In this document: positions 15,510-64,000 of the stretch, piece after piece
Position numbering within the stretch: position 1 is the stretch's first letter
Layout of the letters: each line of letters opens with the position of its first letter
NCBI RefSeq assembly: GCF_902713615.1
Contig: NC_052166.1
Coordinates: 47,531,870-47,595,869 of the forward strand
From: Scyliorhinus canicula
Lineage: Eukaryota
DNA length: 64,000 nt
Direction: 5' to 3'
Position numbers and translations under genes: made by a program
The notes under the pieces: model-generated
Told to the model about the DNA's origin: nothing
Databases searched by the model: none
What the model saw: the letters and a program-made list of their open reading frames with translations, nothing else

Positions 15510-16170
15510 AGGAGGAGAGGGGGAGGGGGGCAAGATTCAGGGAGGAGAGGTAGCGAGATGGAGAGAGATTCAGGGAGGAGGGGGAAGGGAGGTGGTGGGA
15601 TTCAGTGAGGTGAGGGAGGTATTGAGAGAAATTCAGGGAGGAGACAGAGAGCTGGTGAGATGGAGAGATTAAGGGGAGAGAGAGAGATGTAACGAGATGG
15701 AAAGATTCAGGAAGGAGGTGGAGAGATGGAGAGTCAGGGATGCGAGAAAGAGGTGGAGAGATTCAGGGATGAGAGAGGGCAGTAACAAAATGGAGAGATT
15801 GAGGGAGGAGAGACAGGGGTGATGATATGGAGAGATTCAGGGCGGGGAAGGAGGTGGAGAGATGAAGAGATTTAGGGAGGAGTGAAGGAGGTGGAGAGAT
15901 AGTGAGGGTCAGGGTGGCGAGATGGAAGAGATTCAGGGAGAAGGGAGGTAGAGAGATTCAGGGAGGAGAGAAGGAGCTGGGGAGATGGAGAGGTCTCAGG
16001 GAGGAGAGAGGTCTAGAGATGGAGAGATTCAGGGAGGAGAGATGGAGGTCTCGAGATGAAGAGATTCAGGGAGGAAGGAGGTCTAGAAATGGAGAAATTC
16101 AGGGAGGAGGTGGAGAGATTCAGGGAGGAGAAGGAGGTTGTGAGATGGAGAGATTCAGGGAAGGAACTTA
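15510..16170. repeat. Purine-rich degenerate tandem repeat (GATGGAGAGATTCAGGGAGGAG-like) within an L2-like relic
   Basis: Repeated GGAGAGATTCAGGGA motifs; flanks at 15350-15510 and 16170-16460 resemble a reverse-strand L2 3' region. Confidence 0.7.
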
Positions 16171-16476
16171 AGAGGGAGTTGTAAACATGGTCATCAATGG
16201 TGGCACAATTAAAAAAAAGGATTAATCGGCAGTCAGAACTGGAGGATTGCAGTGAAATAGGATTGCCAGGCTGGAGAAAGTTGCAAAGATCGGGAGGGGA
16301 AGAGGTTCCCGAGGGATTTGGGCAAGAATGTTCAAGCTGAGGGGCTGCAGGATCAGGACCAATATGTGTTAGTGAGCTCAGGCTGATGAGTGAACAGGTT
16401 TGGGGCTAGTCAGGATATGGATGCAGCATTTGGGATGAGCTCAGGTTTATGGAGTTATGTGGTGACACGTCGGGTG

Positions 16477-16655
16477 ACGGCTTCTCGGCCTTTTGGCTAA
16501 GATGAGCGTGAGGTCAGGTGTAATGCCTGGATCTGGTATGTCTCTTCTGTGGGGATCGTGAGTTGGATTCAGTTTGGGTTGGATTTTGGAGCGCGTAAGG
16601 AGCTGGATTGGGTGTTTGCCCCTGTCCACACTCTGCTCTGGCTTTGTAACTCCGA
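16477..16655 (+). pseudogene. Diverged U2 snRNA-derived sequence (retro-copy or SINEU-like head)
   Basis: GCTTCTCGGCCTTTTGGCTAAGAT is identical to U2 nt ~4-27. Colinear downstream matches: ATCTGGTATGTC, Sm-like GGATTTTGGAGC, TTGCCCCTGTCCAC, CTGGCTTTGTAACTCC. The branch-point recognition GTAGTA is lost. Confidence 0.85.
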
Positions 16656-16677
16656 TCAAGTAATTTTTTAAAAAAGG

Positions 16678-17511
16678 ATGAGTCGGGTGTTTGAGGGGAT
16701 AGAGGATAAGTCCGAGGGGTGTGGGAGGGACCCAGTGAATCACGTACATATTGGTCTGGCCATGTCCTAAGCTAGTGAACGTTTAGGCTCTTTCTTCAGC
16801 ACCGTGTCAGTAATCGTAAGCAGGGAGCTGGAATGGGGTCAGATGTTTTAACCCAGGGGTGGGCAAACTACGGCCCGCGGGCCGCATGCGGCCCGCCAAA
16901 GGTCTTTATGCGGCCCACCAAGATTTTTTTTTTTTAATTTTAAGGTTAATGGGGGGGGCTGTTGGATTACTGGTATAGGGTTGACTTGAGTAGGGTGATC
17001 ATTGCTCGGCACAACATGTGTTTCATGTGAAGTTTCTACTTTAAAATATTAATTAATAAAAATTAATTGCTTTTTTTTTCTTTAAAAACCTTTTATTTTG
17101 GCTATTTTAAATATTAATTATTTTACTTAATATACTATGCGGCCCTTTAAAATTGTGAATTTCTGAATGTGGCCCTTGCACGGAAAAGTTTGCCCACCCC
17201 TGTTTTAACCTTTGCCTCGCTGATTGCTCGTAGGCGGGTTCTGTTGAAGTGGAGGTCAGCTTCTCCACCCAGTGCCTCGGTGTGGCTGGGGGAGTTTTTG
17301 TATTTGGAGAAAGTTAAACACACGCTGAGGGGGTCGATTGGGAGCTTCTCTATAAGAAGGCAACCTTTTGTTATGTATCTTAAAGAGCTGATCACTGTCA
17401 GCTGTTAGGAGGGGTAGGGGGTTTGGGGGGCTGTTCTTGATTATGTTTTTGTATATAAATTTAAAAATGTTTTTTACCATATTTTTATATTAGAAATATT
17501 TACCAAAAAAA
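16678..17511 (+). mobile_element. L1-clade LINE 3' fragment directly after the U2-like head, split by a hAT MITE
   Basis: Reads MSRVFEGIEDK...NHVHILVWPCPKL and DVLTFASLIARRRVLLKWR...YLEKVKHTLRGS, homologous to the C-terminus of the L1 ORF2 at 18802-20271; A-rich end at ~17505. Confidence 0.8.
16854..17202. mobile_element. Non-autonomous hAT (Charlie-like) DNA transposon / MITE, 349 bp
   Basis: Perfect 16-bp TIRs CAGGGGTGGGCAAACT / AGTTTGCCCACCCCTG; perfect 8-bp TSD TTTTAACC (16846-16853 and 17203-17210). Confidence 0.95.
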
Positions 17512-17831
17512 GGCTGCACTTGTAGGGTTCAAGAAATGGGCTCCAAATCTTTCCCCTGAAGGAGCACATTAGCCCCCTCATTCTCTCTGGTTACAATTCT
17601 ACTGGTGACAGCAGCAGAAGATGGAACGCTGAATGTGAAGGGATTCACTTAAATTGGAATTCTTACATTCAATAGTCAGCAAGGCGACTTATTGGTTCAC
17701 CTATCCGGGCAGTAAATGTAACATTTCCAGTCTGTTGTGTATCTATTGGTGCGAACTGTTATACTAACTAATATTCGACGGTCAGTTCAATGTGATTACA
17801 AATATTTTTGTACAAGCTTTAATGTGATCCC

Positions 17832-18574: not shown

Positions 18575-21133
18575 TTTTTTTAAATAAACAATTTTATTGA
18601 GGTAGTTTTTGGCTTTATAAACAGTTACAGACATCATCAGAAAGAAAGCAAAAAAGGCAAAAATGTGCAAACATCCATGTACTTTCAATACTTCCATCGT
18701 AACATACTGCACAAGCCCGCTCCTCTCCCACCGGTACTACCCGCCATATTTTCCCTCCTACTCTACTCTACACCCCCTCTACCCCCACCCCCTGCTGACG
18801 CTCACTCTCCCGCAAAGAAGTCAATAAATGGTTGCCACCTCCGGGCGAACCCCTCCACAGATCCCCTCAAGGCGAACTTAATTTTTTCCATCCCCAGGAA
18901 ACTCGACATGTCCGCAAGCCACAACTCCGTCTTCGGGGGCTTTGAGTCCCTCCACGCCAATAGTATTGGTCGCCGGGCTATCAGGGAAGCAAAGGTCAAA
19001 ACATCGGCCTCTTTCTCCCCCTGGACCCCCGGGTCTTCCGAAACCCCAAAAATTGTCACCCCTGGACTCATCACCACCCTTGTTTTTAGCACCCGGGACA
19101 TGACCCCCGCAAAACCCTCCCAGTACCCCCTCAGCTTAGGGCATGCCCAAAACATGTGAATGTGGTTCGCTGGTCCTCCCGCGCACCTAGCGCATTTGTC
19201 CTCTATCCCGAAGAATTTGCTCATCCGAGCCACCGTCATATGGGCCCGGTGAACGACCTTAAACTGAATCAGCCCGAGCCTAGCACATGTCGCGGTCGAA
19301 TTTACCCTACTCAGGGCCTCTGCCCACAGCCCATCCTCCATTTCCCCACCTAGCTCCTCCTCCCATTTAAGTTTCAGTTCCTCTGTCTGGGACCCTTCCT
19401 CCCTCATGAGCACCTTATAAATACCCGAGACTCTACCCTCCCCTTCTTCCCTCCTAGAGACTATTCTGTCTAGGATCCCCATTGGCGGGAGGCGTGGGAA
19501 AGATGGGACCTGTCTACGAACAAAGTCCCGCAACTGTAGGTATCTAAAGTCATTTCCCCTTACCAACCCAAATTTCACCTCCAAGTTCCTCAAACTCGCA
19601 AAGCTCCCTTCCAGGAACATATCACCCACCCTTCCCACCCCCGTCCGCCACCATACTCGGAACCCCCCATCCATACTGCCGGGGGCAAACCGATGGTTGT
19701 CGCAGATTGGCGCCCAGACAGACGCCCCCATCTCCCCTACATGCCTCCTCCACTGGCCCCATATCTGCAGGGTCGCCACCACTACCGAGCTGGTGGTGTA
19801 CTTGGCCGGCGGCAGCAGTAGAGGAGCCGTGACCAGGGCTGCCAAGCTGGAGCCCCTGCACGAAGCCGCCTCCACCCGCTCCCAGATAGACCCCGTACCC
19901 ACCATCCACTTCCTTATCATAGCGATGTTGGCCGCCCAGTAATAATTAATCAGACTCGGCAAAGCCAGCCCTCCCTCGCTGCGGTTCCTCTCCAACATCG
20001 CCTTCTTCACCTGCGGGGATTTTCCCGCCCAGACAAAGCTCATGATCATCCCATTAACTCTTTTGAAGAAGGACTGTGGGATAAAGATCGGGAGGCACTG
20101 AAAAATAAACAGAAATCGAGGGAGGATTGTCATCTTTACAGTCTGCACCCTCCCTGCCAACGACAGCGGGAGTGCATCCCATCTCCGAAACTCTCCCTTC
20201 ATTTGCTCCACCACCCTGGCCAAATTTAACTTATGCAGCCGGCCCCAGTCTCGTACCACCTGGATTCCCAAATACCGGAAATCTTCCTCAACCAGCCTAA
20301 ACGGTAGCCCTCTCGATCTGTTCTCCTAGCCCCTTGCCTGGACCACAAACATTTCACTCTTGACCGTATTTAATTTTTATCCTGAGAACTGGCTGAACTT
20401 CCTCAACATTCCCAGTATACTTCCCATCCCGGCCACTGGGTCCGACACATACAGGAGCAGGTCGTCTGCATAAAGAGAGACCCTATGTTCTATCCCGCCC
20501 CTCACCATTCCCTTCCATCCCTCTGCGGCTCTCAGCGCAATCGCCAGCAGCTCTATGGCCAGCGCAAACAGCAGCGGGGAGAGCGGGCAGCCCTGTCTGG
20601 TCCCTCGGTACAACCTAAAGTACTCTGACACTTCTCTGTTAGTCCTGACGCTGGCCCTCGGGGCCTGATATAATAATTTGATCCAATCCACCAATCCCTC
20701 CCCGAACCCAAACCGTCCGAGCACCTCCCATAGATAGTCCCACTCCACCCAGTCAAAGGCCTTCTCGGCGTCCATTGCCACCACTACCTCCAGCTCCCTA
20801 CCCACTGGGGGCATCATTATCACATTAAGTAATCTTCTCAGGTTGGCTGCCAGCTGCCTACCTTTCACGAACCCAGTTTGATCCTTCCCAATCACCTCCG
20901 GTACGCAGTCCTCCATTCTACCCGCCAGTACCTTTGCCAGGAGCTTGGCGTCTACATTAATCAGGGAGATTGGCCTGTAGGACCTGCACGCCTCCGGGTC
21001 TTTACCCCGCTTCAATATCAGAGATATGGTGGCTTGTGACATTGTCGGCGGCAGGGTCCCTCTGTCCCTTGCCTCATTGAAAACCCTCGCCAAGACCGGG
21101 CCCACCAGCTCAGAGAACTTCCTATAGAACTCT
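18575..21133 (-). mobile_element. 5'-truncated L1-clade LINE (ORF2 RT to C-terminus), young
   Basis: RT motifs DAEKAFD, GTRQGCPLSPLLF, YADD and a C-terminal CARC...H...C motif. ORFs 20377-21105 and 18802-20271 are in the same frame, split by stops at 20377-20379 and 20326-20328. Poly-A at ~18575 and a ~14-bp TSD ATTCAC(A/T)TCTCTTT. Confidence 0.95.
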
Positions 21134-22394
21134 AATTCACTTCTCTTTTATGCCTTTTATCGGCTTGCATGGCTTTTATATGTATTGAGATTTGTTGGTC
21201 AATGTTTCAGCACTTTTGAGTCAAAACAATGTGGTTTACTCCTCGGTGATTCATGGCAACTGAGGGAGTTGGGGTGGGGCCTGGTTTTTGGTGGAGCTGC
21301 TGCCTTTGAGATGTTTCCCACTCTGATGACATGAATGAAGGCTGCTGGTGATCCGTCTGATAGTCTTGTCTCTGCGGTGCGGGATGTTAAAGCCCAATTT
21401 TAAGAGTTGCAAGGCATCTTCATGGAGGTGAAAGCAGTGCAGGAGGAAGTTCTTGTAGCAGAGAGAGCACTGTCTCTGGTGGAGGTCAACTTCACATGGT
21501 TGGGTTCCTGTTGCATGGCCTGTCATCCATTCTGAAGAATTCGGGTGAGGATAAAGGGGAGCCGGTTAGGAGCCCGATTATGCCTGGTGTCCCCGGTGAG
21601 GTGAGAGGTGTTCCCAGCTGAGTTTGAAAACTGGCTACTATTTCTTGGGAGTCTCTATCTGGAGAATGGGCAGCTTGGATTCAATGGAACACATATAATC
21701 CTATCTTCAGGCCTGGGTTGGCCTCCCAACCTCTGGTTCTTTGTGGTCCTGTTGTCGGTTGAGAGACATTGGGGTTGACTGAGTCAGCCGGTCTGTTCCT
21801 CCACTTGCTGAAGCCTACGTAGTTGACCATCTGAGCTAGGTTGTGTCGGCAAGTTGGAACTAATGAGATGCCTGCTCCATTGATTGGAATCTTTGGAAGA
21901 TCCTGAAGTATGCTCTCCATCTCAGATCTTGCTTCATCTTGGATGCCAACGTTCTTTGTGCGCCAGTGGAGTGGTCTTTGTTCTGATGAATGGTTCATTT
22001 CTCAGTTTTTATCCTGGATTTTACTCCTTGTTAAAGCTGCCTATCATTTGCATGCAAGGAAGTAAATATTTCAGGCGTGATGTCCTGCACCGTTGGTTAT
22101 CCTGATTTAATAAGGTTTTAACATGTTAGACTGAATATTGTGTTCAGGAGTTATGCAGTTTCTTTATCCAAATAAAAGTAAAAGGTAAAATCACCATCGT
22201 CCCAATGACCATAGGACAGCTGACTGGTGGTGATTTAACATGAGGATCACCACACCTCAGACGAGGGGTAAGATTGAGAAGGCTTCATGAATAGCCTCAG
22301 CCGGTAGAGGAATCGAATCCACACTGTTGGCCTTGCTCTGCATCACAAGCCAACTGAGAGCTAGGGCAAGGGACAAAGGTGAGGAAATGTAAAC

Positions 22395-25399: not shown

Positions 25400-26340
25400 G
25401 GGGAGGGGCTGCGTCTCATTGGATCAGTTTTGGAGGCACAATGGGTCCAATGGTTTGGTGTGTGGGGGATGACGATGGGGTTATCTGAGGTGGTTAACAC
25501 GGGGGTGTTAGGGTGATGTGGAGACCCGGGGTCCACCTGTCTCTACTTTAAATATATGGAGACAACTCATGCAACATTTCAAGCTGGGCCCCTTTTGTAT
25601 GAACCACTTGTTTAAACTGGCGAAGTTGGGGGCCACATTTGAGTGGAAGAGGCTGGAGAGAGAGAGGGGCATTTATTTTTGGAGGGGCGGTTTGCCAGCC
25701 TGGAGCAGCTGAAAGTCGGGCTATTGTACTCAGATGCTATTAGGCGCCTCCAGCTTCAAAATCTTGTTTGACAGACGTTCCCGACGTGTCTGATGGCACC
25801 GCCTTCAATCTTATTGGACAGGATTCTTTCCTTTTCAGGGTTAGAAGATGCCTGGCATCTAGGGACTGATTTTGGGTGAAGAGTTGCCTCGGTGGAGGGG
25901 GTGAAGACTGAATGGGAGAAACTGAGACCTATGCTGGACGAGATGTGAAGCGAGTCCCTCTGCAGGGTGATCATTATGTCATCCTGTGCGATGCTGAGTC
26001 TGGGTCTCCTGAATATTGAGCTGGAGCCCTATCCTTTAGTGGTTATATTCAAGGTATTGTACCTGTCAGAGTTGCAGGGGCAGATGCCCTGGCATTCCCC
26101 TCACTGATTGCTCAGAGGTAAATCCTCCCCGAGTTGGAGACTGGACTTGGCTAGGTGACTTAATGGAGTTTTTGCACCTCTATATAAAGTCAAATATACA
26201 AAGATCAATTGAAGGGTTCCACCAACCATTCATATTGTTGGAATTGGTCAGTTAGCTGTTGGGGGAGGGGGTGGGGCTTGCTCTTGTTTGTCATTTTTGT
26301 ACTTCGTATCTTTTGGGTATAAAATTTGTAAATACTTTTC
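25400..26340 (+). mobile_element. Degenerate L1 ORF2 3' fragment
   Basis: VSTLNIWRQ and CCCTCACTGATTGCTCAGAGG resemble the L1 at 18575-21133. Confidence 0.6.
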
Positions 26341-57859: not shown

Positions 57860-60155
57860 TACAGGTACTGCGTGTCTTTGATATGTATGTCCCTGTCAGG
57901 CAGGGAAGAGATGGTCGAGTGAGGGAACCATGGTTGACAAGAGAGGTTGAATGTCTTGTTAAGAGGAAGAAGGAGACTTATGTAAGGCTGAAGAAACAAG
58001 GTTCAGACAGGGCGCTGGAGGGATACAAGATAGCCAGGAGGGAACTGAAGAAAGGGATTAGGAGAGCTAAAAGAGGGCATGAAAAATCTTTGGCAGGTAG
58101 GATCAAGGAAAACCCCAAGGCCTTTTACACATATGTGAGAAATATGAGAATGACTAGAGCGAGGGTAGGTCCGATCAAGGACAGTAGCGGGAGATTGTGT
58201 ATCGAGTCTGAAGAGATAGGAGAGGTCTTGAACAAGTATTTTTCTTCAGTATTTACAAACGAGAGGGGCCATATTGTTGGAGAGGACAGTGTGAAACAGA
58301 CTGATAAGCTCGAGGAGATACTTGTCAGGAAGGAAGATGTGTTGCGCGTTTTGAAAAACTTGAGGATAGACAAGTCCCCCGGGCCTGACGGGATATATCC
58401 AAGGATTCTATGGGAAGCAAGATATGAAATTGCAGAGCGTTGGCAATGATCTTTTCGTCCTCACTGTCAACAGGGGTGGTACCAGAGGATTGGAGAGTGG
58501 CGAATGTCGTGCCCCTGTTCAAAAAAGCGAATAGGGATAACCCTGGGAATTACAGGCCAGTTAGTCTTACTTCGGTGGTAGGCAAAGTAATGGAAAGGGT
58601 ACTGAGGGATAGGATTTCTGAGCATCTGGAAAGACACTGCTTGATTAGGGATAGTCAGCACGGATTTGTGAGGGGTAGGTCTTGCCTTACAAGTCTTATT
58701 GACTTCTTTGAGGAGGTGGCCAAGCATGTGGATGAAGGTAAAGCAGTGGATGCAGTGTACATGGATTTTAGTAAGGCATTTGATAAGGTTCCCCATTGTA
58801 GGCTTGTGCAGAAAGTAAGGAGGCATGGGATAGTGGGAAATTTGGCCAGTTGGATAACAAACTGGCTAACCGATGGAAGACAGAGAGTGGTGGTGGATGG
58901 CAAATATTCAGCCTGGAGCCCAGTTATCAGTGGCGTACCGCAGGGATCAGTTCTGGGTCCTCTGCTGTTTGTGATTTTCATTAACGACTTGGATGAGGGA
59001 GTTGAAGGGTGGGTCAGTAAATTTGCAGATGATACGAAGATTCGTGGAGTTGTGGATAGTGAGGAGGGCTGTTGTCGGCTTCAAAGAGACATAGATAGGA
59101 TGCAGAGCTGGGCTGAGAAGTGGCAGATGGAGTTTAACCCTGACAAGCGTGAGGGTGTCCATTTTGGAAGGACAAATCTGAATGCGGAATGCAGGGTTAA
59201 CGGTAGGGTTCTTGGCAATGTGGAGGAGCAGAAAGATCTTGGGGTCTATGTTCATAGATCTTTGAAAGTTGCCACTCAAGTGGATAGAGCTGTGAAGAAG
59301 GCCTATGGTGTGCTAGCGTTCATTAGCAGAGGAATTGAATTTAAGAGCCGTGAGGTGATGATGCAGCTGTACAAAACCTTGGTCAGGCCACATTTGGAGT
59401 ACTGTGTGCAGTTCTGGTCGCCTCATTTTAGGAAGGATGTGGAAGCTTTGGAAAAGGTGCAAAGGAGATTGACCAGGATGTTGCCTGGAATGGAGAGTAG
59501 GTTATACGAGGAAAGGTTGAGGGTGCTAGGCCTTTTCTCATTAGAACGGAGAAGGATGAGGGGCGACTTGCTAGAGGTTTATAAGATGATCAGGGGAATA
59601 GATAGAGTAGACAGTCAGAGACTTTTTCCCCGGGTGGAACACACCATTACAAGGGGTCATAAATTTAAGATAAATGGTGGAAGATATAGAGGGGATGTCA
59701 GAGGTAGGTTCTTTACCCAGAGAGTAGTGGGGGCATGGAATGCACTGTCTGTGGAAGTAGCTGAGTCGGAAACGTTAGGGACATTCAAGCGGCTATTGGA
59801 TAGGTACATGGATTAGGGTAGAATAATGGAGTGTAGATTAACTTCTTCTTAAGGGCAGCACGGTAGCATTGTGGATAGCACAATTGCTTCACAGCTCCAG
59901 GGTCCCAAGTTCGATTTCGACTTGGGTCACTGTCTGTGTGGAGTCTGCACATCCTCCCCGTGTGTGCGTGGGTTTCCTCCGGGTACTCCGGTTTCCTCCC
60001 ACAGTCCAAAGATGTGCAGGTTGGGTGGATTGGCCATGAAAAAGTGCCCTTAGTGTCCAAAATTCTATGATTAACCTAGGACAAAAGTTCGGCACAACAT
60101 AGTGGGACGAAGGGCCTGTTCTGTGCTGTATTTCTCTATCTATCTATCTATCTCT
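57860..60155 (+). mobile_element. Young 5'-truncated CR1 LINE, ORF2 nearly intact
   Basis: ORFs 57883-58449 and 58440-59816 joined by one frameshift near 58440; NYRPVSLTS, YMDFSKAFDKV, QGSVLGP, KFADD; (TCTA)n tail. Confidence 0.95.
59853..60068 (+). mobile_element. HE1-type SINE embedded in the 3' UTR of the young CR1
   Basis: SINE head and core lie between the CR1 stop codon and the CR1 terminal tail. Confidence 0.85.
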
Positions 60156-62844: not shown

Positions 62845-64000
62845 CGGTAATCACTCGCTAAAGAGTATGATTTCCCACCTAAGAAATGTCACGTTACTGG
62901 TTATGGGTTCTGTGGGTCCTCACATGCCTGATGAGCCATAACCTAGAGCTGCATCTTTGTCCACACACTTGGCAGGTGATTCCAGGAGGTGGGATCGGTC
63001 CTTAGACTTTGCTGGTATTCCTGTCTCAGGGTTCTTTCCGGGCCTCCTCTTGCTGTCAGGTGCCCTCAAAGAATTGTGTTCCTTCAATCAGGAGGTTCCG
63101 CTAAGTAGGTCTCCCAGGCATTGATGACTATGTTGCATTTCCTGAGGTAAACCTTCAGGGTGTCTTGAAGTGCTTCCTTTGTCCTCCTCTTGTTCAGAAG
63201 CCTTCCTTGGGCAGTTCGGACACTGGCATCCTAAGCACATGGCTGACCCAGTAGAGTTGGTTTTGGATGAACATAGCCTCGATGCTGGTACTCTTGGCTC
63301 CTTCACGGACACCAATGTCAGTATGCCTGCCCTCCCATCTGATGCAGAGAATCCTCATGCAGCGTTGATGGTATCTCTCCAGGACCTTAAGATGGCATCT
63401 GTATATCGCCCAGGTTTCCGAGCCCTATAGAGTGGAGAGGATGACTGCCTTATATTCGAGGATCTTGGGGTCAGCACGATGTCGTAGTCAACAAAGGCTC
63501 TCATCCTTAGGCGTCTGAATGAGTTGGTTGCAGATTTGATACAATGTTGGATCTCAACATTGATGTCAGCCTTAGAGGAGAGGTGGCTCCAGATATGGGT
63601 AATGTTCCACTTTTGCGAGGGTTTCTCTGTTGGAGAGAGGGACTGGATCTTTCCCTGGGGCAGGTTGGTAAAAGGTTAAGTTTTTTAAGTTTTCCGTCGA
63701 CCTTGTAGATGATGTCCACTCCATTGGGAAGCTTGCTCTTGACAAGGTGATGGATGGTGGTAATGAAGATGAAGAGGGTGGGGGCGGTGACACATCCCCG
63801 CTTGACTCCAGTCTTGACCTCAAAGGTTTCTGTCTTATTTCCGTCAGTGAGGACTGTCGCCGACATCTTGACATGGAGAAGTTGGAGGATGCTGATGAAT
63901 TTCTCAGGACAGCCGGCCTTTGACAAGATCTTCCATAGCAGTTCCCGATTGACTGCTTGCTCAGTTCGTTGAAAGCCATGTAGAGTAGTTGATGTTGCTC
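62845..64000 (-). mobile_element. RTE-clade LINE fragment in a GOLGA1 intron (runs off the window)
   Basis: GCPEKFISILQLLH...VKTGVKRGCVTAPTLF RT motif; 3' part homologous to 31420-32340. Confidence 0.85.

Follow-up and report, generated by a model that had tools for sequence, protein, structure and literature searches.

The U2-like part of this locus is one copy of an abundant repeat family that occurs in at least two related species and is detectable in two more. Within the window, the whole stretch of DNA analysed here with a length of 64 kb, positions 16477-16675 likely represent an old, full-length SINEU-like copy, and the adjoining L1 fragment a separate insertion that does not serve as the tail of the family. 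The locus as a whole most likely reflects two retroposed elements that simply came to lie next to each other, with a MITE splitting the L1 part later. The coordinates of these features, together with the other L1 remnants of the window, are collected in Table 1.

Table 1. Features of the U2/L1 locus and L1 sequences elsewhere in the window, with the evidence on which each is based
Feature	Position	Strand	Basis
GTCGGGTG upstream of the SINE, exact repeat at 16682-16689 in the L1 part	16469-16476	+	candidate SINE TSD or L1 remnant
U2 snRNA-derived SINE-like copy, full-length, decayed	16477-16669	+	Rfam U2 model 1-192, 22.3 bits; contig cover
T6 (16664-16669) followed by A6 (16670-16675)	16664-16675	+	sequence
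L1 ORF2 C-terminal fragment, first part, 5'-truncated, with frameshifts and stops (RMSRVFEGIEDKSEGCG...)	16674-16853	+	tblastn, L1 profile, contigs
hAT-like MITE in the L1 fragment, 349 bp	16854-17202	.	15-nt TIRs, 8-bp TSD
L1 ORF2 C-terminal fragment, second part (FASLIARRRVLLKWR...FVMYLKELITVSC), then stop codon	17211-17405	+	tblastn, profile, translation
L1 3' UTR and A7 tail (17505-17511)	17406-17511	+	contig cover, sequence
AAAAAAGGCTG after the L1 tail, repeating AAAAAAGGATG (16670-16680)	17506-17516	+	repeat search; candidate L1 TSD
L1 element, ORF2 through 779 residues with two stops	18805-21141	-	tblastn
Decayed L1 ORF2 fragment	25539-26234	+	tblastn with the window's L1
Decayed L1 ORF2 fragment	58440-59033	+	tblastn with the window's L1
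Decayed L1 ORF2 fragment	63771-63971	-	tblastn with the window's L1

The relationship of the 5' part to U2 snRNA is real though weak. Alignment to RF00004 had been proposed as a check in the original prediction, which described this part as colinear with U2. A cmscan search of 16300-17000 in E-value mode aligned the copy with the complete model (positions 1-192 of 192), at E = 0.028 and 22.3 bits, below the gathering score of 46; at the gathering threshold, no Rfam match was returned anywhere in the 64-kb window. The stretch starts with ACGGCTTCTCGGCCTTTTGGCTAAGAT, and model positions 4-27 (GCUUCUCGGCCUUUUGGCUAAGAU) are matched exactly, which agrees with the predicted identity of the first 24 or so nucleotides, corresponding to stem-loop I. 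The 23-mer of the U2 5' end is unique within the window, and none of 100 shuffles contained a match. Further downstream, the predicted Sm-like site was recovered as GGATTTTGGAG at 16581-16591, where the Sm site belongs, with remnants of stem-loops III/IV on its 3' side. No part of the copy aligns with the model positions for GUAGUA, the branch-point-recognition box, as expected from the proposed replacement of this box. The copy can therefore be described as intact in stem-loop I and the 5' 24 nt, with a remodelled core that lacks GUAGUA.

Features of an active snRNA gene were looked for in and around the copy. No PSE-like snRNA promoter was found upstream, in line with what had been noted from the sequence at the outset, and no Pol III A/B box pair was found in the copy. 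One A-box-like site with two mismatches lies within stem-loop I, and a B-box-like core is present in this copy and absent from the family majority. In fold stability, the copy does not exceed shuffled sequences (z = -0.16). A functional U2 snRNA gene was ruled out on the basis of the Rfam score relative to the gathering score, the unaligned box, and the lack of a PSE-like site. At the DNA level, a blastn search of the window with 16300-17800 returned neither another U2-like part nor another copy of this L1 fragment.

Evidence for a family comes from contigs of public DNA runs. Logan contigs were aligned, at a likeness of at least 80%, to 16200-17800 and then to 16400-16800; the two main runs derive from the window's own species (X1) and from a second species, organism B (X9). 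On the 401 nt of 16400-16800, 896 contigs aligned in X1 and 1247 in X9, nearly all of them within 16480-16669. The flanks (16200-16469 and 17496-17800) drew the locus's own contigs only. Depth reached thousands on the U2-like part versus single digits on the flanks, values that are contig means and indicative only; likewise, the runs are stored as contigs, so that copy number is merely indicative. Loose ends extended before 16480 in 31 contigs of X1 and 63 of X9, and their mutual agreement was just 0.41-0.43. Hence, the copies lie in different flanks and start at U2 nucleotide 1. The consensus of these loose ends is A/T-rich and finishes in ...ATC in both runs, which sets the 5' boundary of the family at ...ATC followed by GCTTCTCGG, with the start ATCGCTTCTCGG being U2 nucleotide 1.

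The contigs also separate changes that belong to the family from those of this copy. No majority difference was observed in 16504-16545 in either run, which indicates that the non-U2 core is common to the family and not a product of private decay. Where majority and copy differ, the majority letters are nearer to U2, as judged against the Rfam consensus and vertebrate U2. For example, the majority at 16593, 16594, and 16596 restores GGAGCAGG, and the majority at 16610 and 16613 gives TAGGGGTTTGCCCC, a GGGG/CCCC stem III in which a G-C pair replaces the A-U pair of U2. What the family has retained of U2 is the 5' end, stem-loop I, the Sm region, and this compensated stem III. Loose ends behind 16635 in X9 read ...GTAACTCAG and then A9, i.e., other copies end in poly(A), and the A6 run at 16670-16675 is the short A tail of the present copy. 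As seen in the family contigs, the unit consists of a U2-derived body of ~190 nt and an A tail.

The distribution of the family was followed in further runs. It is present at low coverage in a third species (X11), and two short contigs were obtained from a fourth (X14), one with ATCGCTT... at its 5' end; the run of a fifth species (X15) gave no family contigs. The 24-mer GGCTAAGATGAGCGTGAGGTCAGG had no matches in public metagenome contigs or genome contigs. A lone U2 retropseudogene or degenerate gene, with private mutations and standing beside the L1 by chance, is scarcely credible in view of these data and was ruled out. Its low Rfam score, missing promoter, and unexceptional fold would fit such an origin, but the supposedly private substitutions are common to hundreds of contigs from two species, in heterogeneous flanks. 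As a separate observation, 14 probable RNA assemblies from organisms A and B each hold 0.19 (about 3 of 16 sampled words) of 16477-16675, and family sequence thus occurs in transcript assemblies, either as an RNA of its own or as part of host transcripts.

The 3' part of the locus is an L1 remnant. With the window's own L1 ORF2 as the tblastn query, matches were obtained at 16675-16833 (E = 5.6e-4) and 17202-17381 (E = 6e-14). A profile built from 18 L1 ORF2 C-termini matched 16672-16833 (profile positions 451-504) and 17196-17393 (526-594, 59 bits). RMSRVFEGIEDKSEGCGRDPVNHVH of the fragment aligns with RMSKFFGIEDKCARCAGGPANHIH of the window's other L1. Cover by repeat-family contigs extends up to ~17495, and the sequence is single-copy from 17496. 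No closer relatives were found by a search with the 66-aa stop-free piece of the fragment, and none of the 17 homologs of the window's other L1 exceeds 54% identity to it. Within the second part, 17226-17279 has very high contig cover, with L1 sequence in the loose ends on both sides. Relatedly, the 90 nt at 17201-17293 (FASLIARR...W) equal the SINE in the number of contigs that they draw in organisms A and B. These segments are a conserved ORF2 core at the DNA level, common to many L1 lineages, and their high cover indicates that L1 is abundant in these genomes.

The MITE interrupts this L1 fragment. Repeat searches identified its TIRs (CAGGGGTGGGCAAAC...GTTTGCCCACCCCTG) and the 8-bp TSD TTTTAACC at 16846-16853 and 17203-17210, and the L1 copies in other contigs skip 16854-17202. 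Organism B lacks contig cover on the MITE interior, which makes the MITE insertion younger, as the whole MITE family appears to be. In organism B, the ortholog of the locus is ~96% identical, yet the MITE interior is uncovered. Contig cover peaks on the MITE family by a wide margin in organisms A and C and is absent from the MITE interior in B, a distribution that suggests a lineage-specific burst or a recent arrival.

At the junction between the two parts, the contigs of the two families diverge. U2-family contigs stop at ~16665-16675 or run into poly(A), and cover falls steeply in the 16666-16679 bin. One contig of X9 matches 16548-16675 and goes on for ~500 nt in unlike sequence. Conversely, L1-family contigs align from 16674, and 19 X9 contigs that align from this position carry GGTGGTGCATCGGGCACACTTAACGAGGGC upstream, corresponding to VVHRAHLTRA of L1 ORF2; ORF2 therefore continues upstream in other copies of this L1 family. 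The conserved L1 motif VVHRAH precedes RMS in 18 of 18 aligned ORF2 sequences. Among the contigs listed, the only one bridging 16669-16690 is the locus's own (X1, 16646-16844, 4 differences), and cover at 16680-16850, beside the junction, is far below that on the U2 part. Outside the ortholog in the related species, the U2/L1 junction is specific to this locus. The T6 run that precedes the A run seems not to be common to most family copies, since cover drops before it. T6 and A6 together form a palindrome between the SINE body and the L1.

These observations bear directly on how the original prediction had read the composite. It described a short T/A linker, which is present as the T6 and A6 runs, followed by a co-oriented ORF2 C-terminus with an A-rich end. 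Both descriptions of the L1 part hold; the ORF2 used as reference, however, was placed by tblastn on the minus strand at 18805-21141. The L2-like character suggested for the upstream flank found no confirmation. Two origins had been offered, a U2-headed SINE with an L1 3' tail or a one-off chimera. The former would make the composite a member of a SINE subfamily in which this L1 3' end acts as the tail. Such a unit would match the classical SINE architecture of small-RNA head, LINE 3' tail, and A-rich end, and the very high copy number of 17226-17279 would accord with it. It is nonetheless very improbable, given that U2-family contigs end by ~16675 in unlike sequence or poly(A), that L1-family contigs go on upstream into ORF2, that the junction is bridged only by the locus's own contig among those listed, and that cover beside the junction is so much lower than on the U2 part. 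As for 17226-17279, the contigs behind its high cover have L1 sequence in their loose ends on both sides. Because the family contigs end at ~16675 and the L1 contigs continue upstream, the composite of U2 and L1 is not a retroposition unit. The prediction had itself named separate U2-like and L1 parts in other copies as the observation that would speak against it, and this is what the contigs contain. What stands of it is the multi-copy U2-derived family, with its hundreds of contigs, unlike 5' flanks, and common non-U2 core; the chimera received no positive support.

The age of the locus is constrained by organism B. One of its contigs covers 16351-16500 with 6 mismatches, and a second one covers 17383-17800. 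The contig across the 5' junction shows that this junction is orthologous and that the insertion predates the species split. The SINE insertion is therefore old and common to both species.

Short repeats around the two parts provide further information on their history. The 8-mer GTCGGGTG recurs with P about 0.0015-0.005, a post hoc and short match that is offset 6 nt from the A run; its counterpart in the L1 family reads GTGGTGCATCGGGCA. The end of the upstream flank, GTGGTGACACGTCGGG, aligns when right-anchored with the L1 consensus GTGGTGCATCGGG (P about 0.002 for the last 16 nt). On the other side, the AAAAAAGGNTG repeat corresponds to a 4-of-5 match after the A runs, with P about 0.016-0.024, and is likewise post hoc and short. 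The two repeat signals imply opposite insertion orders. A comparison of the 25 nt before 16477 with the 25 nt after 17511 gave a local score of 5 (P about 0.5); no TSD was found around the whole composite, and the organism-B states gave no improvement. Upstream of 16477, no L1 ORF2 was found by tblastn at E up to 100, by an HMM of the 18 ORF2 C-termini (--max), or by a 24-column sub-HMM of the CARLGLIQFKVVHRAH (LIQFKVVHR) motif over six-frame tiles. A resemblance to GLWSY-VVTR in this upstream region was no better than background and was discarded.

Two independent L1-type insertions, in either order, are the most likely history of the locus, and we hold this view with reasonably good confidence. 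In the first order, a 5'-truncated L1 would have landed at the T6/A6 boundary of the SINE tail, with A6GG as the TSD. The insertion would be co-oriented with the SINE, as seen, and the L1 would be bracketed by AAAAAAGGATG and AAAAAAGGCTG; the overlap with the L1 sequence AAGGATG would represent microhomology at the 5' junction. A T6/A6 boundary (top strand TT/AAAA) is an ideal target of the L1 endonuclease. In the second order, to which the GTCGGGTG repeat and the L1-like end of the upstream flank point, the SINE would have inserted into an older L1 fragment, ~20 nt from its 5' end. This would call for a target deletion of ~14 nt or, alternatively, for a TSD that has degraded (P about 0.009-0.03). 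Against this order, no L1 is detectable further upstream with tblastn, profile, or sub-profile. In both cases, the hAT-like MITE would have split the L1 part at a later step.

A template switch offers a different account of the same arrangement. Here, the reverse transcriptase would have started on an L1 mRNA, copied its last 480 nt at the 3' end, jumped at the ORF2 codon ...A/RMS to an A-tailed U2-SINE RNA, and copied the SINE to its 5' end, so that 16477-17511 would be one insertion, as in human U6-L1 and other snRNA-L1 chimeras. Such an event would explain why the L1 is 5'-truncated exactly at the SINE 3' end with no upstream L1 detectable, why the parts are co-oriented, why the SINE is full length from U2 nucleotide 1, and why the junction is private to the locus. 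Divergence from the respective family majority is also roughly alike in the two parts, at about 7% and about 4-5%. Human snRNA-L1 chimeras, U1 and U2 included, are documented (Buzdin 2002; Garcia-Perez 2007, as summarised in PMC4494074) and they similarly combine a full-length small-RNA 5' part with a co-oriented, 5'-truncated, A-tailed L1 at a junction unique to one locus. The present locus differs from these chimeras in having an A run between its parts, no TSD around the whole, and short repeats that bracket each part separately. Its 5' part is, moreover, a member of an amplified family and not a cellular snRNA. A template switch also does not predict that the last 8-16 nt before the SINE resemble junction-adjacent L1 (P about 0.002-0.005), the AAAAAAGGNTG repeat brackets the L1 part alone, and both repeat signals would have to be chance. 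In classical snRNA-L1 chimeras, the snRNA 3' end is joined straight to L1 without an A run, and chimeras are rare compared with nested or tail-targeted insertions. We consider a single-event origin unlikely, and the probability left beyond independent insertions and a chimera goes to other rearrangements.

The structure of the family suggests how it may be mobilised. An A-tailed unit without a LINE tail has a natural partner in an L1-type enzyme priming on poly(A). In the proposed mechanism, the U2-SINE RNA, comprising ~190 nt and an A tail with no LINE-derived tail, would serve as the template of an L1-type reverse transcriptase primed at the A tail. What suggests an L1 partner is the A tail itself, together with flanks rich in A/T and a genome in which L1 is abundant. 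The common remodelled core points to amplification from variant master copies and not from the functional snRNA. A possible relative of the enzyme is found in the window, which holds, besides three further fragments, one L1 with an ORF2 stretch of 779 residues and just two stops detected by tblastn. This L1 is fairly young and may be related to the enzyme that mobilises A-tailed SINEs here; its nearest relatives in databases share at most 45% identity with it.

Comparable solutions are known from other small-RNA-derived elements. Alu and B1, which derive from 7SL and lack a LINE tail, similarly consist of a whole unit built from a small structured RNA and an A tail, and their mobilisation presumably also proceeds via L1 recognition of the A tail. 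The source genes differ: 7SL genes carry an internal Pol III promoter, whereas U2 genes are transcribed by Pol II from an external promoter. Classical U2 retropseudogenes (Van Arsdell 1981, as covered in PMC4494074) share with this family a reverse-transcribed, promoterless, and dispersed U2 sequence. However, they are few and independently copied from the functional snRNA, whereas hundreds of contigs with one non-U2 core are found here.

The closest parallel is SINEU. This group was found in crocodilians, with none detected elsewhere, and was linked to Tx1-Mar (Kojima 2015, PMC4494074); later reviews repeat crocodilians as its host, and the same source treats the transcription and amplification of snRNA-derived SINEs as a question still open. 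The family described here resembles SINEU, and most closely the U2-only SINEU-3. Both are short, poly(A)-tailed families derived from U2 snRNA sequence, and both comprise many copies with common derived changes and are not a sum of independent pseudogenes. Neither has a recognisable Pol III internal promoter, and both are monomeric-Alu-like, with no LINE-derived tail. Features that characterise SINEU are accordingly found in the new family: a U1/U2-derived 5' region (the full model, with 24 nt exact and a majority that restores the Sm flank and stem III), a multi-copy family of common structure (the X1 and X9 contigs with their heterogeneous flanks), and a 3' poly(A) tail (A6 in this copy and A9 in others). 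As for a TSD, this copy has the 8-mer GTCGGGTG, with its 6-nt offset from the A run, as a candidate.

Differences from SINEU-3 are equally clear. SINEU-3 is composed of two U2 fragments with an internal deletion, whereas the present body is colinear with the whole of U2 (1-192), and the core around the branch-point box is remodelled here, unlike in SINEU-3. The host is reported as a cartilaginous fish and not a crocodilian. The Mariner-N4 target preference and the Tx1-Mar partner of SINEU are not visible at this locus, and the copy does not lie in a mariner element. A search of the literature, with Repbase and Dfam outside its range, gave no report of an snRNA-derived SINE family in cartilaginous fish. 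The U2-derived family is real and probably a new member of the SINEU kind. The more comprehensive claim, namely an undescribed elasmobranch SINE family from full-length U2 that represents a second independent origin, comprises on the order of thousands of copies in several species, and is mobilised by L1 via its A tail, has in our view an even chance of being correct.

So far, snRNA-derived SINEs have been published from a single reptile lineage. A second, abundant, and apparently independent U2-derived family in cartilaginous fish would provide a comparative system for the transcription and amplification of such elements: whether master copies carry snRNA promoters, what the conserved 5' end and the Sm site contribute, and which L1 acts as the partner. 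If the elasmobranch family is indeed an undescribed one, the strictly kept 5' 27 nt and the compensated stems would suggest that the master RNA is under constraint. In the boldest version, the locus would be a template-switch product that caught an L1 enzyme on the family RNA. There are also consequences for annotation, as U2-like matches in these genomes are mostly repeats and not genes. The L1 "tail" of this copy is a neighbour, which calls for caution against inferring a head-plus-LINE-tail architecture from a single copy. Lastly, a purine-rich minisatellite with periods of ~17, 37, and 70 nt (GAGAGATTCAGGGAGGAGAGA...) occupies 15722-16161, just upstream of the SINE.
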